Shown in pieces: positions 534 to 59,711 of a stretch of 64,000 nt of DNA; position 1 is the first letter of the stretch; every line of letters begins with the position of its first letter. The DNA lies in the NCBI GenBank assembly GCA_038496445.1, contig JALMLS010000466.1, positions 682,001-746,000 on the forward strand. The letters run 5' to 3'. The notes under the pieces were generated by a model. The model saw only the letters and a list, made by a program, of their open reading frames with translations, was not told the origin of the DNA and searched no databases. The position numbers were made by a program, and so were the translations under genes. Source of the DNA: Trichosphaerium sp. ATCC 40318. Its lineage: Eukaryota; Protista; Tubulinea.

Positions 534-3500
534 CTACGATGTTATATCATCAAGAAGTTTATCTAACTCTGCGTCAGTGACACTTCCTAAAGCAAAAAAT
601 TAGAGACAAAGGAACAGGATGTGAGAAAAAAAAATACGTACTTAAATCAGACATAGTTGATTTGGATAGCTGTCTACTATGTAATGCTGGTGCACGTTGA
701 TTACCACCAGTAGTTCTTGGTGGTTGCTGTGCTTGCTTTGGCTTATTTCCATCAGCACCTACGTGCACATACTTGATAGGTAAATCTAAACAAAAAAGCA
801 GCCGTTAATGCTCAACTCTGAAAAAACTCTGTTTTTTGAGTTTTCTAACGTACTAGGATCGATGTGAGCTTTTGGGACAATATAACGTTGTCTTCCTGAT
901 GGTCTAAACCCAGTTCCCAGATCTTTCATAAGTCTGTTTACGTAGTCACCAGATACATCAGAAGATGATTTCTCCCAGTCGTTTAATGGCTGTAAAGAAG
1001 TCAACAACAGTTTCAAGAGAAAATATACTTACCCGGCCTGGATTTTGTTGTTGTCGTGTAGGCTGACTTACAGTTCTTGGAGCTACAGGCACCGATACAG
1101 GTTCAGGATCCCGTTTCTCTTGAGTTGGCTACAACAAGGTCAAAAATCGACTTTCAAGAGTGAAAATGAAGCTTACTGGTGTCCATGCTGCAGTTGCCCA
1201 AGCTCCGCCTTTTGAAGATGTACGTGATTGAGGAGGTCCCTCAGTGCGTTGTGGTTGTTTTGTACCCGCATTTGCATATACAGAACCTTGACCACCTCCA
1301 ACATGCGCTGTACTTTGTTGACGAAACCTAGAACTCTCTTGTCGCCTTTTCTGTACCATTGCTTGGGCAGCGCTTACACTCACTTGTCGTGGTTGTACTT
1401 GCGATATTCTTTGAACCTGTGGCGCTGATGCTTGACGCATATGTGAGCTACGGTTGGTATTGGCACTTGGTCTGGAACCACCCAAAGAGCGTTGTGAAAT
1501 ATGACTTTGTGGCTTAATATAAGCTGCTTTTTGTCCTGTTGGTCTTCGTGATACTCTGGACATTCTTGTATTTGGTGCTGCTACACCCATATTGACAGAC
1601 GGATTTCTTTGATTTCGTACAACTGGCTGTGATGGCTCTAACGGCATAAAACCGTTTCCTGCTTTACCCGTGTTCACAGAAACGCCAAACTGTCCTTCAT
1701 TGTTTGTTTGTGCAGGAACATTAGTTTCTGTGTGATTATTATTGGCGCCTGAAGGTGAACCAAGGTCCATCATTAACTCGGCAAGCTCTAGTAAAAAGAG
1801 TGAGTAACGCCACGCCGTTATTGAAGTGTACATACCATCATTGAATGCGCTGACACCTGTCATTCCTGATCCAATACTACATGTAGAAAGTGGTGGTGAT
1901 TCTGGAACGAGTTCATCAATAAGCTCATCTATCTTATTAGTTGAAATACTTGCACGTGGATCAAGCGTGTTGAAATCCTGCGGAAGGAGTAAGCGTGCGA
2001 ACAACAACAAAATTGTTTTTGGGCAAGTAAATTAAAAACAAAATGCCTCTTTTTCGACTTACCTTGGGTTGCACATTCCTTGTAGATACTCTTGAATTAA
2101 ATGTATCTCTGCGGTTTATGTCGTTATTATTAATTGTTGTCGGAGGGCCAGTAAACGACGGTACAGTGGCCTCAGAGTTTGATCTTGAGTGCTCCACCTC
2201 TAATTCTCCCAATATAGAATTTAATTCATTACTTGTTACAGAGCAAGCTTAAAAAAACGATTAGACACTGATGATAAGCGAGGAAACCAAAAGAAAAAAA
2301 GCAAGAAAATGCGATGTAGCACGAACCAGAACCAACTGAGAATCTAGTTGATGTAAAATTAAAATCAACACCATAAAGGGTGTTACGAATAGACTCTCTT
2401 TCATCTCCTGGGTCAACACCCATCATTTTTTGTGTATTTATACGTTCTTTGCGAAGTTGGCTTCTACCTCCATTTAGCACTGATATTAGTGCCAAAACAT
2501 CATCATCAGAAGCTGTAGATCCTACAGAGGCTATAGATTGAGGTCGTGATGGGCGCTAATTTGAGATTAGCTGGTTACATTTCATTCAAAACAAATTTCA
2601 AAAGAAATTAAACTAAAAACAAGTACCTCCGACGAGAGCTCCGCTAATAGATCGCCAACCTCACCTACTAAATCAGATATTGCTTCTTCAGCTCTGCCCT
2701 TATTTTTAAGGTTAATAGAGGGCTTATACAGTTAAGTTTGATGTACCCTTGATCCTACAGTCATTTCCATTTCGCCCAAGTTACCACCAAAATCATTATC
2801 ATCAGGCTCAACTGATTTTGTACTCAGGGGTTCCACCTGAGAGAATGAACGCGTGTTTACATCATACGTCAATTCCAAATCGGATATTCTGTAAAGGAGG
2901 TAAGTTGTGGCTCTTTTTTCAATTCTTTTTTTTTTGCGAAGTAAGATCGTACTTGTCTAGGTTAGAACTAAACTCGTTCATTGGTACAGGTTGCGTAGAA
3001 GTCGAAATGAACGATGCAGGTTCTGGCTCAGGTTCCGGTTCATCTACAATATAGTCTGCGTAGTCAATCTCATCTGGGTCTTTATCATGAGATATCTCTT
3101 CGTTTTCGAGAGTTTCTAGCATGGCGTCCATTTCTAGTTGAAACGCTGATACAGACTCTTCCTCATCGTCTTCAACTACCGCATTAGGTGTACTTGCGAC
3201 AGGCTCTATTTTGATGTTATTTTAGGTTGGTACAATAAAATTTGTTTTTTCCGCTTGCAACTGCGTGGTGTGGTGTAGCACGGACGTTTTGTGAATGTTT
3301 GTGTCAAAGACGATTCCTCAATGTCGTTTAAAAGATCATCAAGAGCACTACCTAAATCATCTAACCAGGTTAGCATTGAGTATTCCGTTACACAAGGAAC
3401 GTACTGTTTTCTTGTGGTACATTGCGTAAACTGGGCGTTGCGCTCTTATCTCCACCAAATTCGGCCAAAATAGCACCTACATCGTTCAATAGCCCTTGGC

Positions 3501-5313: not shown

Positions 5314-6235
5314 TTAACTATTGTCAACAGCAGCACCTACGCCAATGATAGACCTTGTTTCAGGAGAAAAAGCATAAAGGAAATACCCACATTGCTCATA
5401 TCTACCAAAATATTGTCCTGTCAAGTGCTTAAAATTCCATCTTTTTGAAGAATCGCAGATTTCTTTAAATGCTTTTTGACATTTTTCAGTATTTGTCTTA
5501 AAATCACGGTAATCATCAGGGTACTCTTCTGCAATCCGTTTGTTCTCATCATTAATTTTTTTAAGAAACTCGTCAGTGTCAATCAGCCTGTTTTCAACGT
5601 CGTCAGGTAGGTTAAATCTACTTAAAATCTCCTTCAGTGCATTTTCAGACAAATTGTCTTCATCCTTTAGTTGAATATAGATAGCCTCCCATATTGGGTC
5701 ACAATTAGCTGTGTAATCTGGATAACGTGTTCCTTTTAATAGAGCTTCCCATTGAGCTGCAATCAACTTGTTACGGCATGTATGATACCAAAAAGAAGAG
5801 TCTTTTCCGTTGTCTTCAAGAATAAAATTTTTCCATTTGTCATCAGCTTCCGTTTCGCTTTCAACAATACCGTATTCTCCTTTAAAAAAAGGTTAGATTT
5901 CGGCCGTGAGCTGCATAAAAAACTACTACTTTACCTGTCGGGAGAACATAAATATATTGATCCTCTTCTTCAGTAAAAACATACTGGTCGTTAAAGTGGT
6001 ATGACCACATTGTTGGAGCTGGTTTGGCAAACGTCGTTTTAAACATTTCAAACCAATGTTGCTTTGTTTTCACTAATAACTCTCGCATGCGCTTCGATAG
6101 CGCCATGTAGGTATTTAGAGACTCTTTTAAAGAGTTGTGCTTGAAAATCTCTAATAGGAGCTCCGGAGGCATTGTCATGCTGCAAGATGTGTCTAATTGT
6201 TGCTTCTTTGAGGGCGGTTGTTCGGTACTGGCCAT
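5314..6235 (-). CDS. F-box protein with uncharacterised C-terminal domain (1 intron)
   Basis: N-terminal MPPELLLEIFKH...MALSKRMRELL...W F-box pattern; a gtaaag...ttaaag intron joins the 5882-6235 and 5314-5766 ORFs in frame. Confidence 0.75.
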
Positions 6236-7823
6236 TTTTGTCGTTTGAAAGTTGTGAGTATGTGTCTTTAGTTCATTGAACGAATTTTACTACCAAAATT
6301 CTTGGAAGTATAATTGTGTTGTACGCCATCAACACTGAGAGTAATTTTTTCGTTTTGAATACAACCACGTATCATTAAGTGACACCTGTCAAAATGTCAC
6401 ACTTTGATATGGAACAACTTTTTTTCAAAGCCGACCACAAGAATAGACAGACAACATGTAAGGTTATAGCACAGGTAACCAAGGTATGTACATAAAAAAT
6501 GTAGTTATGCGTGGTACTATGCTTTGTGGCCATTATACTCCAAGCCCGTTACCTCGAAAATGGTTGTTTTGCGGGCTAAGTCGAAACCCCGTCACTCGAA
6601 CTTGTACGGTTAGAAAAAATTAAGATTAAGATTTGTCACGTGATTTAAAATACCAAAACAGTACCTGGCAGCACTTTATGTGCGTAGTACTATATGTTGC
6701 CGTATTTTTGGCGTTATAAACCCTCACCTAAAAAAACCAAGTAGTCTTATACTATCTGATAGTGGTGCGACAGAACTACTTTAGTTTTCGACTTTTGGAA
6801 AAAAAAGTAGTACACCGTTTAAGCCGAACTATCAAAAAGATGTGAGCTTTCGGTCATTGTATTATGCGCGTAACAAAAAAAAAGCGGCGAACTGTTTCCA
6901 TACTGCAATTAATAGTTGACATTACTTGTTGCACAAACGACTCAAGCTGAAAAAAACGGAAGACCGAATTTACGACTGTTTCTGTCCCGTTGCACTCATA
7001 AGGTTCCTTGCGGAGAATGGTAGCCCAACTCTCTTAGTGGACGCCACGGAATGTCAACTTGCGTATGACTCAAGCTGCTCTAGAGAAAAATCAGCAAAGT
7101 GTTCAACGTGCAGTTCCATGACAAGGTGTGTAGCACAAGTCTAAAAATACATTTTTACTATGTAGTACTCAAGTTTTATTGGTTATAAAAGCAAGCACAA
7201 AGCATATTAAAACTGATGACAGCTACTTAAAGCGTTTTTACATGTACTGAAAATTATTAAAATAGTGTTAAACAATGTCTGATTTCAATTGATCGTTACG
7301 TTTATAGCGTTCAAGAACGCACCTGAGCGTCGCTGTGCTGTAAATACCTTCGGGGTATTAAATATGCCAGATTAGGAGGCGAGTAACGCAGCATCGCATT
7401 CTTATTTTACAAAATTAGCGAAATGCAGTTGCAAGCGCTGCATATGCGTTGTATAGTAATTTTACGCATAGTTGCAGTACACAATTTGAGTTTGAACCTC
7501 TTTTTGCCTAAAAAGGCAGAATTCTTCATGCCTTCCATACGCATGTCCTATCTTCGTAGAGCTTTATTTACGCTTGCAAAGTTGGTTAAAACTATGCAGA
7601 ATAGTTTTTGCTTACCCATTTCTTATTTCCCTTTTGTTTCGATGTTTTACGCCATTTCGACAAGTGATAGCGCTATAGAAAACTTTGTAGAGTACTTCAT
7701 AGATTTTCAAACAAAAACTCTGCCGTCATCGTTCAGAAAAGCGCCTTGAATGTTTTTTCAACTCCATCAACGACGTTAACAACAAGAAAAGGCATTAACT
7801 AGAAACAAAATTAATAGGCTCCA

Positions 7824-8695
7824 ATGCTATCACCACGTCAGACTTATAAGATTGCTGTACTTGGTTCTGGAGGTGTAGGTAAAAGCTGTGTCTCTATAAT
7901 GTTCGTTATGAACCACTTTGCAGAGGTTTACAAACCTACAATTGAAGGCTCGTAAGTAGTTAAAGACTTTTTTTATTTTGGAAACCTTCCTTTTTGTTTT
8001 CGGACTTTGCCATTTTTTTTTAACATGTTGTCATGTCTTGCTTTTGTCACTTGTCTTTTCGCCATCTCACATAATGTTAGGTTCAATAAACAACTTCATA
8101 TTGACGGACAACAATCTAATCTGAAGATCTTGGATACTGCTGGACAAGAAGAGTACGGGTAAGCTTTCACTAAGAACATTGTGTTATTTTTGGAAACAAA
8201 CTTTTTTTGCTAGAGCACTGAGAGAACAGTTTCTTCATCATGGAGAAGGATTCTTATTGGTTTACTCTATAACATCTGAAAAGAGCTTTGAAGAGCTAGA
8301 ATGTTTCACAGAGCAACTCTGTCAAGTCCGGGGTATTGATAGCTCTGAGCTCTCATCAATTCCGATAGTTGTTTTAGGTACGTTCTCATATTCTGTTTGT
8401 GAACACAAAGTCAGGTATTGTGCATTACTGTTTATACTAATACTGCGATGTAGGAAATAAATCAGATCTCTCTACCCTAAGAGAGGTCACAACCCAACAA
8501 GGAAGAGACTGGGCTTCAACAATAGACGCTGATTTCTATGAAGGATCAGCTCTCAACAGAAAAAATGTTGACGAGGCTTTCTGTCAAGTTGTAAGGCGTA
8601 TACGCCTGATCAGGGAGAACACAATGATTCCCAACCTGACCTATAAACAATCCAAGAAGGTTAAAAAAAAGAGAGGCTCTTGTACTTTAATGTAA
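7824..8695 (+). CDS. Ras-family small GTPase (3 introns)
   Basis: GSGGVGKS P-loop, YKPTIEGS switch [17 protein letters not shown], polybasic tail and CTLM CAAX box. Confidence 0.95.
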
Positions 8696-9105
8696 AAATG
8701 AGAAACAACAAAACAATCGTTGTAAAAAATAATAAAAGCGTGTACTTTACCTAAAAAGCCAGAATTCTAAAAATACTGTTTCACTTAATGACAAACGTAA
8801 GTTGATGTTCAAGCGGGATCACACTGAAGATCATCTTCGAGGTACACAAGAAAAGGTGCAACAATAGTATTTACAGACAAGTTGCTTCGAACAACTCAAT
8901 TAACTTGAAGACGAAAGTGTATTTTACATTACTTAAATCAGCGGTAGAGTAACCATATGTACTTGTTACAATAATGTTAACAAAACCAAATGTTTGTGAC
9001 ATGTTTATTTTACATTGAGTTCTCTGGGTACTTCATCAGTAGCTTTTTTGATTTGAATGACCATAAAAAAAAGGACGTCATCAGAAAAAGTGTGATGGTA
9101 GCTCA

Positions 9106-11468
9106 CTAATACTTGAAATTATCAAGAAGGTCGTCCCATATTTTACCCATTTTTGCTAATGCTTTTCTATGTGGGAGTTGGCTTTTTCTTTCTTCCTCCT
9201 TTCTTTTAAGCTCAGTCTTCTTCATTGAATCAACTACTTGGTCAACCAAGTTATCCCATTCTTTTGTACGTTTTGTATTATCTACTCGTTGTAATTCCAT
9301 GTAGTCCTTAAACACCATTAGATCAAAGAATCGAGGTTTAAATAGCAAACAAGAAAAAAAAAGAATAAACCAAAAACTTTTCAAATTGTGTGAAAAAAAA
9401 AAAGAGTCAGCGAAGCTAGCTTCACGTTCTCCTTCTTACCTTTGATGTCCAATTATGCCTTTCCTTATGTGTCTTCCCAAAATATACACGATATGGGCTC
9501 TCTATTGGAAAGCGATCAGAATTTCTCGTTGCATTATCTTCAACAGAATTAAGACCAGTCCTCTCTTTCATCCAGTACATAATTCGTTGATGTGGTAATC
9601 TCCTTTTTTCACGGAACCTCAATGTTATCATAGCAGATAATTCATCTGACAAGCTCAGAGGCCAAGAATTAGTCATTTGCTAGAAAGAAACAAAGTTAAA
9701 AAAAGGTGTAGCTAGAACAGGATTTTTAAGAATGAAATAAGAATGCTTTTCGAAAAGTTGTTTGGCTTTCAATGAAACAAAGAAATTATACCTGCATTAA
9801 CTCTTCTATGAGTTGAAAGTCATGCGGTAGTAAATTACGACGCAAAGCTGTTTGCGTAAACATATCGGCAAGGAAAACCATATGACCTTCCTGTAACATA
9901 AAGTTAATCATGTCTGTTTACCACAGAAAAAAAACCCAAAGAAACTCACCACTCCGTAATTACGGAACCTTCTAAGACAGAAAGTACCAAATTCTAACGC
10001 CAATACTTTTTCAATCCAAGCTATATCATGATCTTCCCACTCATTTATACCAGGTGAAGCAGATACAGCACCAGTTATAATTTCACGAAGGAATGCCATA
10101 TAAGCCCAAGGACCATGTTTTAGCCTTTAAACAAAGTTGTTTTAATTGAAAGAACTTTTTTGGGTTTTTCGTGTATTGAGCGACGTACCTTTCTGGTGTG
10201 GCATACTCCATTACTCCAAGGTTCCTTATGATCCAACACATATTATCAGTATCCAAATCTTCTTCTTTACTGATAGCAATCTTGAAAAAAAAAAAAAAGC
10301 ACTTAGTCATACACAACATCTGTTGTAATGCTTTATAGTACGTACTAGCATACCAATCTCCTTAGGGAGCCATTTTACAGATTGTGGGGTAGTCGGCATA
10401 CCTTCTTCATATGTCCGTACATCTTCAACAGGCAAGGACTGGGCAACACGGAAAATATCCTTTAAAAAAATGTAAATACATCATCCACCATTACTTTCTT
10501 ATCAAAGAACACTCACCACATCGCTCATTTGTTTTAACATCGTAGAAATTAAAGGTAACACCTGCCTTTCTCTCCATACTCTATGAATACCCATAGTCTT
10601 GAATAACCTTATACGCTCATCATCATTAAAACTTGTCATCATGAAATACTCGACTTTGTCCATATTAAAATCGCTTCTTTGATAAACACGTAATATAGCT
10701 TCTGCAGCATACTCAAGTTTATCATCTAGTTTTTTAAAAGCTGTAGCTAGAACATCTAATTCTCTATCACAAATTTCCCTATCCTCCACTGCAGATACTT
10801 CAAGTGTAAGGTCGAGAATATCGTTCAAAAGTAATGATACATTCTTGATGTTAGCCTTAAATTGGTCTTCCTAAAAAAAATGTCATTTTCTTTTTTTGAT
10901 TCCGTTCAATCACGTGTTGCACGTGTTTAGTACCTCTGTTAGTACTTTTAATTTATTCGAAAATGGTTCAAGCTGCTTTGCTAACAAACTATGTTGCACT
11001 TGCATCTGTGGAACTTCAATATTTGCTTTTTCCAAGTTTTTTGCAATACTCGCTTCTTTTTCTAAATCAAAGCCTAGATATGCATAATAAGCGCGTGTAA
11101 TTTGTGTACATGCGAGTTACTTGGTATGGTAGTGTCTAGCGCTTCAATTGGTTTTTCTTTTTCTTCTACCACTGCATTGGGGTTTTTTGAGTTGTTGAGA
11201 ACCATTGTAGACAGCTTTCGCTTATTAGAAGTTGTACAAAGTTTTAAGAAAAAATACGCACTTCTGGATCATCTTCTGGCGCTTGAGTTGATTGCCAGCG
11301 TACATGACTCAAACGATTATTTATTTTACGTCTACTACGTTAAAGTCAAAAATAAACTATTCCATGAGCTCACTCAGCGTACTTGGATACCCTGACGCGG
11401 TGTGATAGCGTTCGCGTCGTCTTAGGGGCGTATGAGCCATTTAACCGCGCAGATGTACGCAGCAACAT
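9106..11468 (-). CDS. Uncharacterised, probably mitochondrial helical protein (multi-exon)
   Basis: Arg/Ser-rich acid-free presequence MLLRTSARLNGSYAPKTTRTLSHRVRVSNRRKIINRLSHVRWQST; exon ORFs 10502-10828, 10083-10319, 9908-10099, 9422-9676 and 9106-9384 are joined by GT-AG introns. Confidence 0.6.
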
Positions 11469-11608
11469 CTACACACTCAGATTATGCGTAGGAGGGAAAA
11501 ACAACAATGTACAAGTCTGTCAGTCGCTGTTAAGTGGCGTTTCGTATTTCCTTCTGTAGAAACAAGATTGGAGAGATGATCAAACTCACCACGAGGATAG
11601 CGTTACAC

Positions 11609-12642
11609 TTATTTATTTTTTACAACTGGTACAAATGTAACGTCATTGTCACCAAGCTTGTAGTGGAGTCTTGGTAATGTCAACGATGCTTCTTTGGCAC
11701 GTAGAAACAACTAAAGCGAAGGTGTCATCAAACAGTAACATAATGTGTTGGTACCTCGCCGTCTGTATAGATTGTTTTCCCAGAGCTCAGACCAGTTACT
11801 TCCATCATTAAATCAGCACGATGACGAAGTGTTTGAAGAAGAACACCATCTGAGGAGTCACTGTGTGCAAGTACTATTAAGCAAGAACCCTACAAGTAAT
11901 TCATTAAATGAAAGCCACGCTCATCCTAGTTGTACCTCGCGCTGGCGTACTAAATTATCACAGTAGTTTAGAAAGTCAAGGAGTTCTGATATAGCCATCA
12001 AGCCATTATTTAGAGTGCTTCTAACAAAAAAATGACATTTGACACATTGAGAGAAAAAAGCACTCACATGTTGTCTACGAGGATGCAAAAAGGCCCTTCT
12101 GTACTCAGAGACTTTACAATAGTATTATACAGCTCTTTTAACGGGTGTCCTTCCTTAGGAAGTGTGAAAATGTTTGTGTTTGATGCGGAGTACATCTCAG
12201 GATGACTGCCTTCAACTGACTTTTGTGTTAGTACAAATACTTCTTGGTAACAAAAGGATACCTGTGACGCTTTCAGTCCAACTGTACGGTGCAGATAAGC
12301 CGTTAATAAAAACAAATTGTTTCTGTTTCACTGCACTGAGTAAATTAACACCCTTTACGTTATTAATGCGCGTAGAAGTGTAACGAGCGTACCAGTTTGC
12401 GACATACGGCAAAATAATGAGTAAACGCATTATCAGTGCTCACGAGCGTTACATGATGCTTGCTCTTTAGGTACAGTGAAATAAAGTTGTAAAAAAGAAA
12501 AGAGGCTTAAAACGCATAATTAGTTTCGAAATGACGATTGAAATGTACCATTCGCGTCTAGTGTATCAGTAATCGCGATAAACGGGAATTTGGGCAGTGT
12601 TTTATCTGACCACCCTAATTTACCGTTTAAACCCTTGTACAT
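11609..12642 (-). CDS. ELP6: Elongator complex subunit 6-like
   Basis: FIAITDTLDANASFLFYNFISLYLK...FTHYFAVCRKLGVNL...FVFINGL...CILVDN...LHYKLGDNDVTF, the ELP6 RecA-like pattern. Confidence 0.8.
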
Positions 12643-12748: not shown

Positions 12749-14069
12749 ATGAGCAACTTGGGATTTTTTAACGTTCGCAAGCCTGCAGCGAATAAACCAT
12801 GTACAGATTGGTTTGGCAAAGACGTACGTAGTATAGCTGCAACGTAAGTGACAACGAGTAGACTACCACTACAAGCTCCAATTCCAATAGCGAGCAGAAT
12901 GCAAGCGGGTATGTGGTTCCTAAAACCTTGATCTCACTCGTTGCTCTAGTTTATCGTCTTTCATGTCTGCCAAACCTGCTGCCACACAGGTAAGTTGATG
13001 TGCAATCTATGACTGCTCACACATTAAGGGTTTCGACATGTTCTCACAATCACGTCCAACACCCAGCGCTCTACTCGGCCTTGGCGACCTGGCTCCCTCC
13101 GCTCCACTCAATACTACCTCTCTACTTGGTCTCGGTGCTATAGCTCCGCAACAGCCAACCCAGACTAATTCTCCTGTCGGCCTCGATTCCATGCCACAGT
13201 CCACTCAAACTAAGGCGACGTCTCACGGAAACTTTGGTGCTATGGCTTCTCCCACCCCAGCAAAGACTACTTCCGTACTTGACCTTGGTGGAATGGCTTC
13301 ATCGACTCCAAGCCAGAGCACTTCTCTAGCCGACATTGGAGCCAATTCCATATCTCTTCCTCCCCAAACACAAGCTACCAAACAAACTGTACACAAGCCT
13401 CAACTACATGAAGCTCAAGTAGCTGAAGTAAAACAAGTAGCACAACCTGATGCAGCGCTACAATTGGTCAACGAGGTATCTGCTAATCAAATGCCAGAAT
13501 TTCAAGAGCCAACAAAGGCGCCCCAGCCATATGCTTTACCACCACAACCAAACCCAGTACCTCTGAAAGTGCCTTCAGTACACGAAACTACTCGTCCAAC
13601 AGCAGTAAACCAGCCTTTCTCACCCGCAAGTACTGGACCACAATTCACTCTACGGTACCATCTACTTGCATCGTCTACAATAACACAACGTTAGTAAGCC
13701 ACCTCAAACTACGGAAACTCCAAAGCCCATCAGAATAGAAGAACCTTGGAAACCAACGAGAATTGCAAACCCTACCAGAACACTTTCACCTCAAGTACTT
13801 GACGATATCATCAATGGCAATCAAGCTAATTAGCCTAGGACAATAATATGGGCAATACTAACGAATCAGGAGATCAGAGCGAGTTTTTTGCAGGTCTGTA
13901 TACGAGATCGCTTGAAAGGATTGAGAAACTAAATGCATCAATGAATGATAGCACATTTCTCTTGAAAGCACTACGCGTAAAAATGGCGCGTTTAAACAAT
14001 GACATTCTATTGATGAGTCTACCACTTGAGAGTATTACGGACGATGATGTAATGCAAATTGAAGAATAA
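12749..14069 (+). CDS. Low-complexity S/T/P/Q-rich protein with a C-terminal coiled coil
   Basis: ATG 12749 with GT-AG introns; ORFs 13038-13694 and 13848-14069; degenerate ~17-aa repeats (TTSLLGLGAIAP). Confidence 0.55.
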
Positions 14070-23243: not shown

Positions 23244-24845
23244 ATGCGCACCGCTATTCTTCGTATAGTGGCTATAGTATTTATTGCATTGTCTATCATA
23301 GTATTTACATCCTTTGGTTTCGGTCTAAACAGCACAAACGAAGTTTTTGCTTTCTTTCAAATTGGAGCTACTCTACTGCTATTGAGGTATTGGCCAAGCA
23401 AGAATGAAAGTTGGGTATGGACAATACTAAAATTCGTTATTTTGGTTCTTGCTATTACTTTGGGCTACACTATCGCGTTTGCAGGGTCGTTCGCAACGGA
23501 CTCGAATGGTTTGGGTCGTAGCGTTGGAATCGTTTTTGGCATTTCAATAGGAATCGCCGTTATTTTGCTCGCTACAGTATATGCGCCTCACTACCGTATT
23601 CGTACCCGTTTCGAGGATCACACAAACTCATTAGGCTTATTTTGCCTGTCACTCGTTTTCCCCACTTTATACACCGCAATGTGGTTCCTCATAGTCAAGG
23701 TATGGCGTTTTCATAAGCAAAACAACTATTAACCCACCTAGGTACTGCCAATTGGAGATTTTGCACATCCAGCTTACGGATTTATTAACGTACAAAGTCT
23801 TGTGATGGTTTCATCGATTTTCGGGATTTCTGGCATCATATTCCTTGTTTCTTGGGCCGCTGGATTCGCAGTCACTGCCTTCACTACTAAAGACTCTAAA
23901 AAACTAAAATTAACGGTTATTGTGATGACTGTTGTCGTGCTACTTGTTGCTACGTACAGCTTATCTCAAACAATATCAGCGCAAAGACTATTCTACCAAT
24001 TACCTGTTGAAGTGTCTCCAGGTAGCCAACTCAAAGTCACGTGCTTAATAGGCGGTGGAGAATCAAAAACAGAAGAAGTACTTAAAGCTGATCCTGGTAT
24101 AGACTTGGTATTATGGAGTGAAGAGACAGGTTATTACAATGATGTCGATGAGTTAAAAAATTTACAAACAATCGCTAAACAATATGGATCTGTTATAGCA
24201 CCTACGTATTTTAATAGTACTCAGTCTAATAACATGGCTGCTCTTATTAGTGATAATGGCGATGTATTATTTACATACAAAAAGCGTCATCCTGTACCAG
24301 GCGTAGAAACATCAATCAAGAGAGGTCCGGGAAAGGTTCAGTCTGCTGATACTATTTTGGGAAAAATTGCTTTAGCAATTTGCTTTGACTTTAACTTTCC
24401 TGACTATATCGCTAAAGTATCACATGATACTGATATTTTTCTTCAACCTTCTCAAACATGGGGACCTATTGGTAAGTACCATGCAAAGGTAAACGCAATG
24501 AGAAGCGTAGAACAAGGATTTCTTTTGATAAGATGTTCGAGTTACGGATACTCTGGTGTATACAATCCTGATGGATCCTGGAGCGCTTTCACTCCTGATA
24601 AAGAGTCTGGTGCTTATACTTTTGTAGTGCCACGAAGATTTAATCGTGTATTCACTCTTTATTCTTATATTGGAGACACTTTTGGATGGATTACAGTTAT
24701 TTTTGCGTTTTTATACTTAGGAGGACTTGTTTTTGTTCCAAATTCTATTTTGAAGAAGCTTAGATATTGGACTATTCTTTCAAATACACGTGACCAGTAT
24801 GCAAATATCAATAGTGACAAGGACGAAGACTATGGAATGATATAA
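23244..24845 (+). CDS. Apolipoprotein N-acyltransferase (Lnt)-like membrane nitrilase-fold protein (1 intron)
   Basis: N-terminal transmembrane helices, PIGDFAHPAYG...IFGISGIIFLVSW, catalytic triad motifs LWSEE / YKKRHPVPG / ICFD, MRSVEQG, C-terminal TLYSYIGD plus a transmembrane helix. Confidence 0.85.
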
Positions 24846-25156: not shown

Positions 25157-26745
25157 ATGAACGTTCGCGCTGTATTATTTGCATGTAAGCCTCAGAAAAC
25201 ATACCAACCTCAGCACTTACCGCATCTAGTGTTAATATCACAAGTAGCATCTATAGCTAATATTCTAGACTTTGGGGCTATCCCATCAACAAATACGAAT
25301 GAAGCAGCCGAAACAAATGCTGTTGCCCTCCAAAAGGCCTTCTATGCTGCTAATTCAAGCCCCACGAGCGACAGGATAGTGCTTATTCCAGAGTCGAAAG
25401 AATTTTACATATTCGCTGCTGAAGTTTTCAACGTTCACGACATTACAATACAATTGGATGGGCACGTGATTTTTGGTTTTTTGCGTATCTGGTTGTGAAA
25501 AGTTTTCATTTCAGCATTTTGATTAACACTTCTGTTCTGTAAACAGTCGTTTGGTGATTTCAAACAACATTACAGCGTTTCCTCAACCTAGTCAGTTTAA
25601 TCATACTTTTGCCGCTTTGTATATTGGTGACAGCTCAAATATTCATTTGACTGGTTATGGGCAGTTCGATGGACAAGGTTACGATTGGTGGTGGTCTATT
25701 ATTCTTCTTGAGATTCATAATAGACCTCATATGGTTGCTATGGAACGTGTTGAAGGAATAGTGATCGACAATTTATACTTTACTAATTCTCCTAACTTTC
25801 ACCTTCGTCTTCATGATATTAAGGATTTGCATGTCAAAAATATAACAATATACGTTGATACAGAAAGTCAACATGCAATGTTACAAAAATCTGGGAATTG
25901 GCACGAGGAGAGAGGTGTACCAACCTTTCCACTAAATGTATGAAGTTTTTTTATTCTTGCACTTTTCCTCACGCGTTTTTTTTAGACTGATGGTATTGAT
26001 CCGAGTGGTATCAATATCCTTATTGAAGATGTTAATATTGAGAATTATGACGATGCAGTTGCAGTTAAACCATGTACGTTAGAGAAAACAAGGGAGAAAA
26101 CCAACTTTTTTTTAAAGGTAGTGGTGAATGTACATTTTCAACATGCACAGAAAATGTGCTTGTTAGAAACTCTCAAGTGACTTTGGGTGTTGGGATGACT
26201 ATAGGTATTGTTTAAACTCAGTATAACGACACGTATATGCTCACTACTGTTTAGGTTCAGTACCTCCTAAGTCAACGGTCAATTGTGTCCGGAATGTCAC
26301 TTTTGATAACATTGTTTTTACGAAACCAATTAAAGCTTTATACGTCAAGACAAACCCTGGTACGGAAGGTACAGGTATAATCGATAATATAACGTACAAG
26401 AACATTGTTGGCGATGGTGCTTTATGGTACCCTATATGGATAGGTCCACAGCAACAACAACAACCAGGATCAAAAGGAACTGGTTGTTCTTTTTTTTATC
26501 CAATAGATGATGAATGTCCAACTCAACCACGTGTCCCAGTAACAAATATCCACTTGAGTAATATCACATTCACTAATGGTCTTGAACTACCCGGGGTTTT
26601 ACTTTGTGATCCTGAAAGGCCTTGCACTGGATTTACCTTCGACCACGTTTCAAATGAAGGAGAGTTTGGTGTACAAAAAGAATATGTATGTAAAAACGTG
26701 AAAGGCACTTCTACAAGTTCTTTCCCTACTCCATCATGTTTCTAA
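25157..26745 (+). CDS. Secreted glycoside hydrolase family 28 (polygalacturonase-like)
   Basis: Signal peptide; ILDFGA, GQFDGQGYDWW, RPHMV, NSPNFH, PLNTDGIDP, NYDDAVAVK, GMTIGS. Confidence 0.9.
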
Positions 26746-26899: not shown

Positions 26900-27372
26900 C
26901 AGCATTCACAAAGTTCCACTTATTATCTAAAAGAGCAGCAACTAGTACACATTTTGATGAATCATTACAACTTTTGTTGTGGTATGTGGATACGATGGTA
27001 CGACAGCGGCAAAGTGTGGGGTAGTGAATATGCAAAGAATGGTCTAGGTACTACATGGTTGAGACTGGAGAAGTTGAGACAGTACATGGTAATTAACAGC
27101 AAAATGACTGGTATAAAAATGGACAACTATTGCAACAAATTGCATTTGTTGCCTCTGAACAAAATGGAGAATACAAAGAATGGCATGAAAACGGACAACT
27201 ACAGACAAAGAGCATGTGGAAACAAGATGGTGAAATGAAAGTGGGTATGAAAACGGACAACTACATGCGCAGAGTGCGTGGTAAACGAGGTGGTGAAGAA
27301 AAAATACGGCATGAAAACGGACATGTAAAGCGTCTACACATTCGGGTAGATGGTAAACTACAGGGCGGATAA
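26900..27372 (+). pseudogene. Degenerate F-box/MORN-variant repeat gene
   Basis: AFTKFHLLSKRAATSTHFDESLQ aligns with the N-termini of the intact paralogs; remnants GEYKEWHENGQL and RHENGHVK lie in different frames; the start coordinate is approximate. Confidence 0.75.
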
Positions 27373-28023: not shown

Positions 28024-30093
28024 TCAAGCGGCAGGCTTTACAGGTGCTTTCAAAGGCAAGTCGAACTCCTTCCATAGGCTCACTAATGCTTGAACGAGGT
28101 CCTGCATCATTTCAGGCGTATGGACAGGGCTTGGAGTGAACCTGAATCTCTCGGTACCAACAGGAACGGTTGGGTAGTTGATTGGCTGGACGTAGATACC
28201 ATATTTGTCAAGTAAGCGATCACTCATGCGCTTGCACAAGGCGGCATCGTTAACCATTACTAAAAGTTATGTTAGTTTTTTTGTCGTTTTTCATTCCTGA
28301 ACAAAAAAAAAAAGAGACGTACCAGGAACAATATGGCTAGGAGTGATCATGACAGGTAAACCTGCATCCTGAAGCAAGTTCTTGAGCTTAGTAGATTGAC
28401 TTTGGTGATGCTCCCTAATCTCAGGATGCTTCTTCAAGTACGCAATGCTAAAATAAAAAAATAAGAACAAAACTCTTTAACTTGTCTTTTTTTCCAAACA
28501 TCAACTTTTCTTTAGGGTACGTACCTAGCAGCTGCACCAGCGGTTACGCTAGGAGGAAGAGAAGTAGTAAAGATAAAACCAGGAGCATAACTTCTTATCG
28601 CATCGATGGTTTCAGAGGCGCCGGCGATGTATCCGCCAAAGACACCGAAGGCTTTACCGAGAGTGCCAGAGATAAGATCCAAGCGGTGAGCTTGACCAAT
28701 CTTTTCAGCATAACCAGCTCCAGTATTACCATACAAACCAACAGCATGAACTTCGTCAATGAAAGTCATTGCGCCGTGTTTTTCAGCGATATCGCAAATC
28801 TCCTTTATAGGTGCGATAGTACCATCCATGGAGTAAACAGACTCAAAAATAACCAATTTTGGTACAGATGGATCCACTTTGGACAAAAGTTCGTCGAGGT
28901 GTTCGACAGAATTATGTCGGAAGACATGCTTAGGTGCTTTACTAAATCGGATACCCTACAAATGTCTTTAGAGACTAAAAAATGAAAAAAACGGACAAAT
29001 AGTTTTTAATATGTCTACACGCGCACCTCTATAAGACTAGCATGGTTCTTTTCATCAGAAAATAGGGTAAGGCCTGGAATAAGCTTTGATAAACCTTGTA
29101 TAGTCGACGAATTCGCAACTAATTTTTTTTCGTTAGAAAAAGGCAAAGTTTCCTTAAAACTTACCATAACAAGAAGAAAATACCAGTCCTGCTCCTTTTT
29201 TATGTAAATCAGCTATCTCTGATTCCAGTTCTTTATGGTGACGGTTACTTCCAGAGATATTTCTTGTTCCCCAGAACCAGCACCACAAGTTTCAACTGCG
29301 TTCTAAATATTAAATATTAGCGCTAGTTATTTGGTTGGTGCACATTTTGTACCTTTACGGCGTCCAAAACGACAGGGTTTTGTCCCATTCCAAGGTAATC
29401 GTTACTACACCAAACCGTCATTTCCTTATCTTGAACGCCTTCTTGTTTGTACGCGGCTATACAGCGAGTGAGTACAAAAGTGTGATTCGTTCTAACGTTT
29501 ACCCTTTGGAAATGCTCCTCGTTGTCGTGTCATTGTCTTAAATTCACGGTAGCGACCTTCTTCTTTAATTTGTTTTAAACCCTCCTAGTACAAATGTAAA
29601 TAAAAAATATCGTAATAAAGCGTTGTTTTGGGTAATTAATATGTACCTTGATGTATTTGTCGTGAGGTAACGTTTTGGGTTTTGGTTTTTCTTCCTCAGG
29701 TTGTTGTTGCGGGCGAGCTATTTCAGACCATTTACGTTCTATTAATTATTAGAGGGTACACGGAGCAACATGGGGAGATGTGGGATAAAAACACATACCG
29801 AGTGGTAAATCAAAAGCGCTTGGGCTAGCGGTCTCGCTCTCCAAGTCGGCCTCTAGTGCGACATCCACACCGGCCGAATAATAAGTGCGCACAGTTCTAC
29901 CGACAGGGCAACTGGCGTGAAAGCGACGAACTACTGAAACGTCTAATTTCTTTGTGCTAGCAATTGGGCACTGAGTTTTGAGTTGGTTCAAAAATGAAGC
30001 TCCTTGAATCCTTGAGGTGTTCGTTGGTTGCTTTTTAGTCATTGCTGCTCTGTGGAAAGGACATCCACGCATAGCTGCGGCTTGAAATGCCAT
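28024..30093 (-). CDS. HEM1: Mitochondrial 5-aminolevulinate synthase
   Basis: [77 protein letters not shown]; apparent 1-nt deletion at 29269-29272. Confidence 0.96.
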
Positions 30094-37705: not shown

Positions 37706-38859
37706 CTACTCTTCGTCTTCCATTATTAACGAAATTGTACTAATATCACGTGGTGTTCCATCCTTGTCCCAAGCATTGTACGTTCCTTGCCATTCCCCAT
37801 CAACTTTAAATCCATGATAAGCAAGCTGACCATTATCATACCATTGTTTATATTCACCTTCATCATTTCCTTTATCGTTAACAGTAGTATGAAGATAAAG
37901 TTGCCCGTTAGAAAACCAATCCTTGTATACTCCTACAAATACACCCTTTTTCATAAAAGCATGAGTATCCACTTGACCATTCTCATGCCATGTTTTATAC
38001 TCTCCTTCTTCGAGACCATTTTCTTTAAAACTGTCTATTTCTAATTGACCATTTTCGAACCATTGCAAGAATTTTCCATGTTGCATTCCATTCTTCATAT
38101 CACACTTACATACCATAACTCCATTCTCATGCCATGATGTATGAACACCATGAGACATACCATCTTTTTTCTGACATTCAATATGAAGTTGACCACTAGG
38201 GTACCACTGAAGAAACTTACCACATTTCTTTCCGTCTACCATAAAACAGTGAACACATAACTTTCCGTTATCGTGCCACTGCTTGTACTCTCCACTATTT
38301 AGTCCATTTTTCTTTATCACACGTATTTCTAATACACCATTTTCGTGCCATTGTCTATACTCACCATGCATTTTACCTGCGATCATGAAGCCCTTTATTT
38401 CAAGTTGGCCGTTTTTATACCATTGCTTAAACACTCCGTTGTTAAGCCCGTCTTTCATGACGTTTAGCTTGATTAGCCGACCCTTTTTTGTCCATTCTAG
38501 CCATGTGCCACACTTACGTAGCATGGAATCGTATCGTGTCGATATAGCGGCGGTTTTTGACAGCGAGTGATATTTTGCGAAGGTTTCTGCATCGTAGCTC
38601 GAGATAAGGCATTGTAGCTCCTTCGGAAGATGTACTAAACGCGTTTCCACCGCCAATAGTGGTTTGTAGGCTAAGGTGTGTTAGTTCTACAAATAACAGC
38701 GTTTTTTTTTGCTAATAGTGTCGCAGACGACGTGATCGTGCTTAAATGGGTGTTTAATACGCCGTTTACGCCATACCAACTAATTGTAGAGTGTAAAAAG
38801 ATGATTTTGTTCCTAGAGCAACGTATCGTACGTTTTTTAGCATCAGTAACTTGGCTCAT
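37706..38859 (-). CDS. F-box-like + MORN-variant (MORN_2/YwqK-like) repeat protein
   Basis: Exon 1 MSQVTDAKK spliced via a gtacga...ctaac...ttag intron to PYKPLLAVETRLVHLPKELQCLISSY; about 11 repeats of ~24 aa, GxYKQWHENGQL. Confidence 0.85.
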
Positions 38860-55769: not shown

Positions 55770-56782
55770 ATGTTGAGACAGTCATTGCTTCGCTCTGCAC
55801 GTACAAATCGCAGGGTAACATGTAAAATACCTTCAAAGCGCTTTACTCCTACAAGAAAATTTACAACGGTTTCTGTACTGCGAAATCAAGCCGTTGAAGT
55901 CGATTTTCCTTTCGATATACCGCTAGGGGACGGAAATGATAATATTGCAGATGCACAGCAAACTGCAGCGCCAACCATACCTACTGGCGTCAATGGTACG
56001 CTCACGTTGTACAACTGCGCCTTACAACTATCTAGCTCCTAATGCGCCATTTTACGCAATATACAGACCCTTTTCAGGGTACGTCGCGTGTTTTAACGCT
56101 TGTAACAATCACTAGAGAGCGTATGAGTAAGGGAGCTTCATTTCAGTTCAAATTCACCAAAGGATGCGTATACCTTGCTGCAGCGAAACAAATGGTACAT
56201 TAAACAACCTTTTTCGAGTCTCTTTGAAATAAAAAAAACTGACTTTTCCAACTGAAAGCGAGAGAAACCACAACAAGTCTCACCAGGAACTCAAGTATTT
56301 GATTGGCAGAATAAGATTATGTTTAAATTGAGCACTACAGAAATGGGTGAAGTGTTAAACTTTCTACGAAAGAAACCAGTAGGTGAGTGAGACGGTGGAC
56401 GGATACGACTTGCAAAAAAAAAAGACTCTGATTTTAACTTGTTTTAGATGGCTTGAAAGTAAATATGACACATCAATTTAAGCTTTCACAGCAACAGACT
56501 ATATCCAGGCTACAAATGGTACCTGGAAAGGAAGGTGAGTTCACACCCTGGATTTTTTTTTGTGTTAAAAGTCAACGGTTTAAGTTTCCATTTTTTTGAC
56601 TTCTTTTTTGTTTAGGGAGTTATATGATCGGTATGTCACGTGCACCTTATGATCCAATGAATAGAAGTGTTGGTAACAACCCAGAGCAGAAGTATGTCTC
56701 ATTATTCTTTGATGCTAATGAAGCTACTTGTCTTCGAGAGTTTTTTGCAGAGTCTATAAAAAGATCCATGGGATTCTTGTAA
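55770..56782 (+). CDS. Mitochondrial Whirly/MRP-fold single-stranded nucleic-acid-binding protein (5 introns)
   Basis: Presequence MLRQSLLRSARTNRR; spliced core FYAIYRP...KGASFQFKFTKGCVYLAAAKQM...QVFDWQNKIMFKLSTTEMGEVL...VSLFFDANEATCLREFFAESIKRSMGFL*. Confidence 0.75.
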
Positions 56783-56982
56783 AATATAATCCTCTCCAAT
56801 TACAAGAGGCCCTATTTTTTTTTTTGAAAATAAAGGTTACACTATTAAAGTAAGTAACAAGCAACAAGTTGAGTTCAACTGAACCTACTGTTTTTTTTAG
56901 TGGTTGAAGAAAACATACAACAAAAGTTAGCAGCAGCTGATTTCTCTAACATCACAATTTTTTGTTTTCTTTTGTAATTTAT

Positions 56983-57760
56983 TTATTCGTCTACTTCTTC
57001 ATCGTTAATGTAATGACCTTGTTTTTGTACTTGACCATTCAGATGCCAGCGTGTGAAATCTCCTTCTCTTTTGTTGTTCTTGTACTTACACATTTCTTCA
57101 AGTTGTCCAGTTCTATACCAATACATGTGCTCTCCTTCTCTTTTATCATTAATGAAACGACACTTTGTCCTTAATTGACTATTCTCATACCACTCTTTTT
57201 GCTCTCCTTCTAGTTTACCATTGACATAGTTACATTGATAAAACATTATACCAGCTTTAGTCCAGAAGGTTAACACGCCATGCAGCTTACCATTTACACT
57301 TTGACTAGTTTCAATTAACTGACCATTCTCATGCCAAGACCTGAATTCTCCCTCCACTTTACCATTAATTATATAACACTGTGTAGATAACTGACCATTC
57401 TCATGCCAAGACTCGTATTTTCCTTTCATCCTACCTTTTACAAAATGACATGCACTAAGTAAAGGGCCTTTCTTGTTTTTTTCGTAATACCAACTCTTAG
57501 CCTCTCCGTGTTCTTTTCCATTTACAAAATAGCGCCGTGAAAGTACGGTTACTTTTCCATTGCTTATACAAACCGTTTTTTCTAAGGCACTATTGAACGA
57601 GTTGTAACAGCTGCCTTTTACAAAGTAGCGGCCATTTTACGAAAACGTATGGACTTAAATCTATTAAGTCGAGTGCAGTTCAAGTGGAAGTTCTAATAAA
57701 ACAACCTTGTTTCTTTGCTCATTTTTGTACTTCTTATTCAATTGTCGAGTAACCATTGAA
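56983..57760 (-). pseudogene. F-box/MORN gene copy with a frameshifted 5' part (possibly an assembly artefact)
   Basis: 3' part is nearly identical to 58415-59005; several indels upstream of ~57530 break the frame. Confidence 0.6.
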
Positions 57761-57851
57761 ACAAAAAACTCTGTTTTACGTCCAATTAGATAGTATAACA
57801 ATACTCACTAAATTAGTAGTTTTGGTTTTTTATGTGTAGGTTTTACTTGTG

Positions 57852-58285
57852 GAAGTGTTAAACTTTCTACGAAAGAAACTCTGATAGGTGAGTTTTCGTT
57901 TGGACGTCATACGGCAAAAAAAAATCCAGACTCTGATTTTCCTGTTTTAATGGCTTGAGGTATATGACACATCAATTTAAGTTTCACAGCAACGGACTAG
58001 TATCCAGGCTACTGGACCTGGAAAGGAAGGTGAGTTCACACCCTGGTTTTTTTTTGGTTAAAAGTCAACTTTTAAATTTCCATTTTTTTGACTTCTTTTT
58101 GTTTATATTAATGATAATATGTCACGTGTCCTTATTCCAATTTTTAGAAGTGAGGTATACCCACTATGTCTCATTATTCTTTGATGCTAATGAAGCTACT
58201 GTCTTCGAATTTTTTAGAGTCTATAAAAAGATCCATGGGATTCTTGAAAATATACCTCTCATTAAGAGTTTGTTTTTTTTTTAAA
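57852..58285 (+). pseudogene. Degenerate duplicate of the 3' half of the Whirly/MRP-like gene
   Basis: Remnants MTHQFK and YVSLFFDANEAT with many deletions relative to 56349-56782. Confidence 0.6.
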
Positions 58286-58414
58286 GTCACTATTAAAGTA
58301 AGTAACAAGCAACAAGTTGAGTTGAACTGAACCTACTGTATTTTTTAGTGGTTGATGAAAACATACAACAAAAGTTAGTGGCATCACAATTTTTTGTTTT
58401 CTTTTGTAATTTAT

Positions 58415-59201
58415 TTATTCGTCTACTTCTTCATCGTTAATGTAATGACCTTGTTTTTGTACTTGACCATTCAGATGCCAGCGTGTGAAATCTCCTTCTC
58501 TTTTGTTGTTCTTGTACTTACACATTTCTTCAAGTTGTCCAGTTCTATACCAATACATGTGCTCTCCTTCTCTTTTATCATTAATGAAACGACACTTTGT
58601 CCTTAATTGACTATTCTCATACCACTCTTTTTGCTCTCCTTCTAGTTTACCATTGACATAGTTACATTGATAAAACATTATACCAGCTTTAGTCCAGAAT
58701 GTTAACACGCCATGCAGCTTACCATTTACACTTTGACTAGTTTCAATTAACTGACCATTCTCATGCCAAGACCTGAATTCTCCCTCCACTTTACCATTAA
58801 TTATATAACACTCTGTAGATAACTGACCATTCTCATGCCAAGACTCGTATTTTCCTTTCATCCTACCTTTTACAAAATGACATGCACTAAGTAAAGGGCC
58901 TTTCTTGTTTTTTTCGTAATACCAACTCTTAGCCTCTCCGTGTTCTTTTCCATTTACAAAATAGGTTTCCGTGAAAGTACGGTTACTTTTCCATTGCTTA
59001 TGCAAACCGTGTTTTTCTAAGGCACTATTGAACCGAGTTGTAACAGCCGCTCTTTTACAAAGTAGCGGCCATTTTAAGAAAACGTATGGACTTAAATCTA
59101 TTAAGTCGAGGTGCAGTTCGAGTGGAAGTTCTAATAAACTACAACGCCCGTTTCTTTGCTCATTTTTGTACGTCTTATCCGTATTAGTACCAAGTAATCA
59201 T
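58415..59201 (-). CDS. F-box + MORN-variant repeat protein (intact copy, 1 intron)
   Basis: ATG ATT ACT TG, intron 59190-59139 (gtact...tgtag), then T gives MITCLLELPLELHLDLIDLSPYVFLKWPLLCKR (F-box), followed by ~8 GxxxSWHENGQL repeats. Confidence 0.85.
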
Positions 59202-59711
59202 TGTTATACAACTAACCTCTTGTTTTACGTCCATTTAGTGCTAGTATCAACAATACTCGTAAATTAACTAGCATTGGTTTCTGCGTTGATTTTTACTTGT
59301 TTCAAGCGTTGCTTGATAGCAATAGGTGCGCTAATATGGAGCGTTCTTTGCACTTCATCTCAGTCACAATATCACACACATAGGTTCAGTGGAATTGATC
59401 TCGGATAAACAGTTAGTACTATTATCGAGATCATTGGGGTTAGTACGGACAAGCACCGTTGCTGGGAATGAGATTAGTAAAATAGTTCGGACAATTTCTT
59501 CGGAATTTGTTAACAATGTGGTGGAAAGCATCCCGAACTTCTTGAAATTCTCATAACATTCCAACAAGGTTTATGCGCTGGGCATTTATTGGAAAACAGT
59601 CACTTTGTAACATGCAACAGTTTTGCTACAACTACCACGTCTCTTTTACTTTACACTTATTGTCGTCTTTTATTCCCTTCAACGATAAATTAACATCCTT
59701 TGCAAAGGCTG

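Follow-up and report, generated by a model that had tools for sequence, protein, structure and literature searches.

The closest described counterparts of the genes reported here are F-box proteins, the MORN-repeat families of giant viruses, the YwqK-type proteins of bacteria, and a set of gene models in the published genome of Trichosphaerium itself. The genes lie in a stretch of 64,000 nucleotides (nt) from Trichosphaerium sp. ATCC 40318 (contig JALMLS010000466.1, positions 682,001 to 746,000 of the forward strand), which is referred to below as the window and is numbered from its own first base. Four loci in the window combined an N-terminal domain of about 45 residues, called the head, with a tandem array of MORN_2 repeats (Pfam PF07661; gathering cut-off 29.6 bits); two of these copies were apparently intact and two were broken. 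The intact genes are designated g1, which contains the minus-strand open reading frame (ORF) 37706-38656, and g2, on the minus strand at 58415-59137.

F-box proteins (PF00646, PF12937) are the receptors of Skp1-Cul1-F-box (SCF) ubiquitin ligases, and the head resembled the F-box in its length of about 45 residues, its Leu-Pro-x-Glu-Leu/Ile start, its three predicted helices and its position N-terminal to repeats that could bind a target. As with F-box proteins, the family to which g1 and g2 belong is large and fast-changing, and when the head was compared with the Protein Data Bank (PDB) by Foldseek, the best matches were mostly Skp1-bound F-box subunits. Unlike F-box proteins, the head was missed by F-box profiles, carried a signature of its own after helix 3 and had alanine at the place of a tryptophan. 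In papers on giant viruses, MORN and F-box genes are treated as separate large families, tandemly duplicated and divergent (PMC5786535; Pandoraviridae, PMC5995976; Marseilleviridae, PMC8208085); Orpheovirus, for example, has 55 MORN and 81 F-box genes (PMC5786535). The MORN families of Orpheovirus, Pandoraviridae, Marseilleviridae, Pacmanvirus and Faustovirus resembled g1 and g2 in repeat type and small protein size. However, g1 and g2 are cellular genes with amoebal neighbours and with predicted spliceosomal introns that would be needed to supply the start codon, and their likeness to giant-virus proteins lay at the level of the fold only, where it was strong for the repeats. The bacterial YwqK-type proteins (YwqJK module) share the same repeat, PF07661, and provided the best-scoring sequence hits to the g1 array, but they do not possess the head, and many have signal peptides or other N-termini instead. 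'Antitoxin', as applied to YwqK, is a name given in annotation; none of the MORN_2 genes of the window had a gene for a partner toxin beside it. No description of a fusion between an F-box and MORN_2, or of MORN_2 as a partner domain of the F-box, was found in the literature searched.

The draft genome of Trichosphaerium was reported by Tekle et al. (2023; PMC10521059) to have a G+C content of 37.7%, with 8.7 introns per gene and exons averaging 154 bp, and these figures agreed with the window. The same authors already found F-box and MORN domains to be the most frequent ones among genes putatively transferred from giant viruses. The counts that follow are from a portion of its Table S2 covering about 3,000 of 27,369 gene models, with the scaffold of the window outside it. 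Within that portion the best hit was 'YwqK family antitoxin' for 51 models, and a MORN protein, including those of Pacmanvirus and Orpheovirus, for a further 18. The YwqK/MORN models encode 148-283 amino acids and some occur in adjacent pairs; the few visible in the accessible rows of Table S3 have 0-1 introns. They come from the same organism as g1 and g2 and are genes of the same kind, and by simple proportion, rather than by counting, the family may comprise several hundred members in Trichosphaerium. For these models the accessible part of the paper gives best BLAST hits, with neither a conserved N-terminal domain nor an F-box-like fold. In outline, both the occurrence of the family in Trichosphaerium and its resemblance to viral and bacterial proteins have already been published. 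What is added here is modest: that a conserved head missed by profiles is common to the MORN/YwqK-type genes of this amoeba, that structure prediction gives this head an F-box-like fold, and that some giant-virus MORN proteins, judging from predicted structures, appear to share the two-part design.

It had been proposed in an earlier note on this DNA that four loci share an N-terminal motif followed by repeats, and this was confirmed by Pfam, tblastn and alignment alike. The ORF of g1 (316 codons, the second-longest in the window) contained eight MORN_2 stretches (103.3 bits, E = 5.9e-31). MORN_2 was also recognized in part of g2 (58415-59005, minus strand; 80.2 bits, E = 1.9e-23), the open frame of which runs on to 59137 to give 240 codons, in a tandem copy of g2 (56983-57429, minus strand; 84.2 bits, E = 9.4e-25), and in a decayed copy (27130-27372, plus strand), where the score of 28.5 bits (E = 1.2e-6) fell slightly below the cut-off. 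When the window was searched by tblastn with g1 and g2 as queries, exactly these four loci matched and none besides. The repeats were identified as MORN_2-type both by scores above 29.6 bits, in all but the decayed copy, and by a hairpin array with a period of about 24 residues. Cores of the form Trp/Tyr-x-x-Asn-Gly were spaced every 24 residues, and counting these cores gave 10 clear units in g1, preceded by a degenerate one (10-11 in total), and 6 clear units plus 1-2 degenerate ones in g2 (7-8 in total), consistent with the approximately 11 and 8 repeats counted in the earlier note; the number of hairpins in the AlphaFold model of g1 equalled the number of repeats counted from its sequence. 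The arrays were also said to be free of introns, and in both g1 and g2 the array was indeed a single, unbroken ORF. The 950-nt intron-free body of g1 is unusual, because the genome averages 8.7 introns per gene and exons of 154 bp. Repeat copies within a gene were at most about 70% identical at the DNA level, and at that level the repeats are old. A scan of the window for tRNA and tandem repeats detected none.

Over their first 110 residues, g1 and g2 were 37% identical and 37 columns were invariant; the invariant residues from Leu-Pro onwards included L, LP, E, L, F, K, L, K, AA, TR, S, L, K and G, and in both genes the motif started with Leu-Pro and ended directly ahead of the first hairpin. 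Alignment A1, in which g1 and g2 were each represented by the head and two and a half repeats, was used for a profile search of 1.84 billion proteins, which returned 5,748 matches at E ≤ 1e-3. Approximately 35 of the best 150 matches spanned their own N-terminus, the head and the repeats, and they aligned across the head without gaps. The N-terminal 45 or so residues are, then, a conserved domain common to about 35 divergent public proteins; as in g1 and g2, it preceded a MORN_2 array in these relatives, and Pfam found MORN_2 in 37 of 37 aligned family members. Conservation was expressed as the fraction of the family alignment sharing the majority residue of a column, numbered by g1 position. 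Up to the second helix the conserved columns were L10 (0.85), P11 (0.91), E13 (0.82), I18 (0.74) and D22 (0.79), together with position 29 (0.88), where the majority residue is other than that of g1. These were followed by L32 (0.91), K34 (0.71), A37 (0.94) and R41 (0.88), and then by K48 (0.85), G50 (0.85) and W52 (0.76). After helix 3 the family had a conserved signature, TRF-D/N ... K-x-G-x-W, with shares of 0.6-0.9.

Nearly all of the relatives bearing the head were MMETSP transcripts, several with complete ORFs, or contigs of about 1 kb from JGI sample 3300016894 (the source of L002-L004), and since most are transcripts it follows that the family is transcribed. Their base composition equalled that of the window genes (G+C 0.36-0.37; G+C at third codon positions 0.28-0.32), in agreement with the view that the MMETSP and JGI 3300016894 relatives are probably paralogues belonging to Trichosphaerium itself. 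Exact-pattern scans of the metagenome contigs with two exons of the window, one from a carbon-nitrogen hydrolase gene and one from g2, gave no match, and exact look-ups of the corresponding MMETSP0405 hydrolase proteins gave no record; the JGI sample was linked to Trichosphaerium through base composition. Two members came from elsewhere: P0246, from a Logan assembly, and P0219, encoded at 6247-7140 of a 14-kb metagenome contig (L001, ENA ERZ25072490) with a G+C content of 0.47. The called protein of P0219 contained two short insertions resembling unspliced introns. It was 40% identical to g1 and of the same head subtype, while g2 was only 34% identical to g1; the g1 subtype therefore had a closer relative in a GC-richer eukaryote than in its own neighbour, indicating that subfamilies persist across species. 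By these comparisons, neither the family nor the g1 head subtype is confined to Trichosphaerium. A word search limited to the head of P0133 gave 4 candidates, all of them known members, named viral and F-box proteins being out of its reach, and a search with g1 in a collection of 5.8 billion proteins gave MORN_2-only proteins of 27-43% identity, among which the named ones were bacterial 'YwqK family antitoxin' proteins.

The structure of the head was predicted with AlphaFold, using the family alignment. Helices were predicted at residues 12-19, 23-29 and 34-40, immediately following L10-P11. The mean predicted local distance difference test (pLDDT) score was 72 for the head modelled alone and 79.6 for the full-length g1 model, in which residues 11-40 were above 90 and residues 50-190 formed paired strands at about 98. 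In the comparison with the PDB, at least 9 of 22 chains among the Foldseek matches listed were what we take to be, partly from chain length, F-box subunits of Skp1 complexes (rice D3, a plant leucine-rich repeat F-box ligase, FBXL2, FBXL5, Fbw7 and Cdc4), which aligned over 33-49 columns with a root mean square deviation of 1.7-3.7 Å. In the viral structure library BFVD, 20 of 27 named matches to the head were annotated as F-box proteins, belonging to pandoraviruses, marseilleviruses, Orpheovirus, Sylvanvirus and a mimivirid, and four further named matches were Orpheovirus 'MORN-repeat proteins'. This enrichment is meaningful because F-box proteins constitute a tiny share of either library. 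The best structural F-box match had E = 0.78, the best probability was 0.87 and query-normalized template modelling scores were 0.4-0.5; among PDB chains there was no match below E = 2. Structure comparison, which the earlier note had named as a test, was therefore equivocal: a three-helix fold and Foldseek lists dominated by F-box proteins were in its favour, but no match was obtained at E < 0.7. On the basis of these models, it is fairly likely that the head has an F-box fold.

Several observations weigh against this interpretation. All structural F-box matches were non-significant (E = 0.8-9, probability ≤ 0.87), and small three-helix units are readily matched by chance. The isolated heads of g1 and g2 matched no Pfam F-box family at E ≤ 10, and the Pfam F-box families were found in 0 of 37 family members at E ≤ 1. 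A phmmer search with the heads against all PDB sequences returned no F-box protein, and an hmmsearch of the PDB with the family profile returned no F-box chain at E ≤ 10; the matches to that profile were exclusively MORN-type hairpin arrays, namely the N-domain of SET7/9 and kinesin-MORN. A match to an F-box profile had been set beforehand as a test, and on both counts (Pfam on 37 members and the PDB profile search) it failed. Classical F-boxes have a tryptophan after Ser/Cys-Lys; where this would stand, the family had a near-invariant alanine (A37, share 0.94). With respect to the genes themselves, the start codons of g1 and g2 depend on predicted introns, and no transcripts of g1 or g2 were found in the sequence searches.

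A comparison was available within the window. ORF 5882-6235 (minus strand), taken as a control, matched the Pfam F-box-like family with E = 1.4e-4 and 22 bits (cut-off 24.3), and the F-box family with E = 0.012. When the family profile was aligned to this ORF with hhalign, 38 columns were paired with Leu-Pro in register (pairwise E = 0.026). The ORF, which opens with Met-Pro-Pro-Glu-Leu, is part of a second, unrelated F-box-like gene at 5314-6235 (minus strand), and ORF 5314-5766, directly downstream and without a Pfam family, may be the C-terminal part of the same gene. Gene models named 'F-box domain protein [Indivirus ILV1]' are listed by the hundred in the accessible part of PMC10521059; these appear to be another family than the one containing g1 and g2, and ORF 5882-6235 may be among them.

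Negative profile tests and non-significant structural matches are what would be expected if the head were a family-specific helical cap, or a module for dimerisation or localisation, that does not bind Skp1, leaving g1 and g2 as plain MORN_2 binding or scaffold proteins unconnected with ubiquitin ligases, the role assumed for bacterial YwqK-type and viral MORN proteins. The family's own signature after helix 3 runs directly into the first hairpin, which also suggests capping of the repeat sheet. Nevertheless, this explanation was considered rather unlikely. The dominance of F-box proteins in both Foldseek lists is unexpected for a generic three-helix unit, the Leu-Pro-x-Glu-Leu/Ile start and the N-terminal place before repeats reproduce the usual layout of an F-box protein, and the Leu-Pro register is kept against an F-box-like ORF of the same genome that Pfam can detect.

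The working model, held with about even confidence, is that g1 and g2 represent a lineage-expanded family of substrate receptors in Trichosphaerium, each consisting of a diverged F-box and MORN_2 repeats. Each protein is small, about 150-330 residues, and comprises a short, variable leader, a Leu-Pro head of some 45 residues and 3-11 MORN_2 (YwqK-type) beta-hairpin repeats that build one long sheet. Under this model the sheet would bind the target, while the head, as a strongly diverged F-box, would dock the protein onto Skp1 in an SCF ubiquitin ligase, so that family members would serve as interchangeable receptors for different substrates. The family gains members through local tandem duplication, and many of its copies decay. 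Skp1 binding and SCF function are suggested for the family by analogy only, and the role in host defence raised in the earlier note would likewise be conjectural. Should the head be a real F-box, ubiquitin-ligase adaptors would include hundreds of genes in amoebae and dozens in giant viruses that are at present called only 'MORN repeat' or 'YwqK antitoxin', the F-box repertoire would gain a new target-binding module, and many Trichosphaerium genes scored as bacterial or viral transfers from repeat-only BLAST hits would require re-annotation. It would also provide a handle on the contest between amoebae and giant viruses over the degradation machinery of the host. If it is not an F-box, what is left is a lineage-specific expansion of MORN_2 proteins, already reported for the Trichosphaerium genome and of modest interest. 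A bolder version of the F-box reading, thought improbable, combines a true Skp1-binding F-box with possibly several hundred host receptors and with Orpheovirus and asfarvirus-like amoeba viruses carrying the same fusion, such that the design would mark a shared battleground: the host would aim its ubiquitin ligases at intruders, and viral copies would redirect the same machinery.

The expectation that MORN_2 arrays are abundant in giant viruses was upheld, since the full-length g1 model matched 259 BFVD structures at E ≤ 1e-3. The leading matches were MORN/YwqK-type proteins of Pithovirus, Hyperionvirus, Orpheovirus, Marseillevirus, Edafosvirus and Harvfovirus. Orpheovirus MORN-repeat proteins matched both the head and the full-length models; A0A2I2L4R6 of Orpheovirus and A0A1X7QH01, which is unnamed, did so over almost their whole length, and from these paired matches the two-part design of head and MORN_2 array probably exists in amoeba viruses. 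These results, together with the best hits to Pacmanvirus and Orpheovirus and the prevalence of MORN and F-box among viral-transfer domains in the accessible part of PMC10521059, make it possible, if only tentatively, that giant viruses were the source of the whole family, or of no more than the MORN_2 array, which subsequently gained introns and expanded; this is how the genome paper reads such genes, and it corresponds to the 'domesticated viral module' of the earlier note. The intron-free coding body of g1, set against an average of 8.7 introns per gene, would fit such an origin. So would P0010, a MORN_2 protein whose array was 38% identical to that of g1 and which is encoded on a gene-dense, 117-kb contig (L006, JGI 3300032897). 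The contig carries genes for a protein kinase, RNase III, Cu/Zn superoxide dismutase and a 2-oxoglutarate-Fe(II) oxygenase, as well as several small MORN_2 genes; genes of interest lie at 8001-8741, 11298-11594 and 11549-11947. It is probably an uncultured giant virus carrying MORN_2 genes. Set against a viral origin, the relatives that bear the head at the sequence level were all eukaryotic transcripts or eukaryote-like contigs; neither the profile search nor the IMG/VR scans recovered a viral protein with the head domain by sequence, and the two IMG/VR pattern scans, with g1 and g2, reached no relative at all. Viruses could just as well have acquired the genes from amoebae. Neither the published best-hit tables nor the present data show which way any transfer went.

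A bacterial source was thought doubtful. It would require that a YwqK-type array from bacteria became fused to an F-box-like exon of the host within amoebae, and that giant viruses took up the fusion later. Its attraction is that the named best sequence hits to g1 were the bacterial YwqK proteins of 27-43% identity described above, that P0136, from an NCBI metagenome-assembled genome, was 40% identical to g1 over 229 residues, and that in the accessible portion of Table S2 of PMC10521059 bacterial YwqK best hits outnumber viral MORN ones threefold (51 vs 18). But no bacterial match bore the head, best hits of repeat proteins are unreliable, and a simple exon fusion predicts an intron between head and repeats, whereas the introns modelled here precede the head in both genes. 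The notion that the loci belong to an integrated giant-virus region was rejected, because the neighbours are cellular-type genes (below) and no viral hallmark gene was seen among the window ORFs tested.

The main-exon frame of g1 was open from 38680 without an in-frame ATG ahead of the head, and g2 likewise lacked an in-frame ATG upstream of its head; for this reason, each gene requires an upstream exon. Frame-keeping GT-AG pairs were enumerated to give models of the 5' exons (Table 1), which are models only, and the main exons of g1 and g2 had been taken as queries in the homology searches. The 5' introns of both genes are thus inferred from splice-site models. For g1 the donor TTG|GTATGG at 38776 was strong, and GTATGG was also the donor of the apparent intron of a carbon-nitrogen hydrolase (CN hydrolase) gene nearby; combined with the acceptor at 38670, this donor was in frame only with the ATG at 38843. 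The proposed first exons would encode 22 codons in g1 and 3-14 in g2, and complete homologous transcripts began 6-60 residues ahead of Leu-Pro. Both proposed introns were upstream of the head, at unequal distances from it. The positions suggested in the earlier note were retained for g2, where the ATG at 59201 fits with a 52-nt intron, but not for g1, where the suggested ATG at 38859 was out of frame with the best donor and acceptor.

Self-comparison of the window identified a tandem duplication, in which 56840-57828 and 58288-59280 shared 93.5% identity (mismatches, 28; gap openings, 21), and the units were spaced about 1.43-1.45 kb apart. Within the coding part, the copy at 56983-57760 differed from g2 by 8 mismatches and 5 deletions, all five of which were frameshifting. 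The deletions were confined to the 5' third, that is, the head and first repeats, so that the head motif was retained but across shifted frames; in the 3' 460 columns there were 2 mismatches and no gaps. An assembly error was rejected as the likely cause of these frameshifts, given that homopolymer runs accounted for only one of the five gaps and that mismatches clustered in the same part. The frameshifts more probably reflect genuine decay of the head, error in a long-read assembly being a lesser possibility. The flank on the 3' side of each tandem copy was also duplicated (56453-56800 and 57955-58330, plus strand), and these flanks had diverged much further than the genes had in their 3' halves. 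Identity stepped sharply from about 99.6% to a much lower value, a pattern suggestive of gene conversion, or of a second, partial duplication, across the repeat arrays.

The other broken copy, an old pseudogene at 26900-27372 (plus strand), was matched by tblastn with E = 8.5e-11 from g2 and 3.2e-10 from g1, and contained 3 in-frame stops within 155 matched codons. The second half of its head motif was kept and the first half eroded, and the repeat consensus was partly retained. The earlier note counted a single pseudogene among the copies; two are in fact broken, this one and the tandem copy of g2. The description of the family as dispersed also has to be revised, since all four loci were inside 32 kb and two of them were in tandem. 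In other respects the evidence sustains the proposal of a multi-copy host family with variable repeat number and with birth and death of copies, as seen in the tandem duplicate and the two broken genes. Rapid turnover was supported by the same observations only in part, because the g1 subtype has persisted in the eukaryote represented by L001.

Table 1. Positions in the window of the MORN_2 loci and of their component features, including modelled 5' exons and introns
Feature	Position	Strand	Description
g1 main exon	37706..38670	-	Head and 10-11 MORN_2 repeats; stop codon 37706-37708
g1 N-terminal domain	38513..38638	-	Residues 7-48 of ORF; Leu-Pro then three helices; candidate divergent F-box
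g1 MORN_2 array	37730..38509	-	24-residue period
g1 proposed 5' intron	38671..38776	-	106 nt, GTATGG...TTAG; frame-compatible GT-AG enumeration
g1 proposed first coding exon	38777..38843	-	67 nt, from ATG 38843
g2 main exon	58415..59138	-	Head 59009-59137 and 7-8 MORN_2 repeats; stop codon 58415-58417
g2 proposed 5' intron	59139..59190	-	52 nt, GTACTA...TGTAG; frame-compatible GT-AG enumeration
g2 proposed first coding exon	59191..59234	-	ATG 59201 (11 nt) or 59234 (44 nt), one frame
Tandem near-copy of g2, broken	56983..57760	-	5 frameshifting deletions; last 148 codons open
Decayed copy	26900..27372	+	3 in-frame stops; tblastn and MORN_2
Tandem duplication with g2 pair	56840..59280	.	Self-comparison of window

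The genes surrounding these loci were of ordinary amoebal type and intron-bearing, in line with the host setting proposed in the earlier note. A gene for a membrane-anchored CN hydrolase occupied 23244-24845 (plus strand) and consisted of two long exons; the apparent intron between them (GTATGG...AG, about 90 nt) lay at approximately 23710-23797. Its exon at 23805-24842 (346 residues) was 100% identical over 98% of its length to a protein from MMETSP0405, Trichosphaerium sp. ATCC 40318 (taxid 498012; Amoebozoa, Discosea), a match that identifies the organism from which the window comes, and the next relatives, including a protein of Balamuthia mandrillaris, were 41-45% identical. Immediately upstream of the decayed MORN copy were exons of a GH28 (polygalacturonase-like) gene (25157-26215, plus strand), and downstream of it was an exon of a class I/II aminotransferase (28512-28886, minus strand; Pfam E = 2e-24). 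All three of these neighbours were present as separate, exon-sized ORFs, consistent with introns. Elsewhere in the window there were low-complexity ORFs rich in Ser, Thr, Pro and Gln, at 1129-2010 (minus strand, 293 codons) and 13038-13694 (plus strand, 218 codons).

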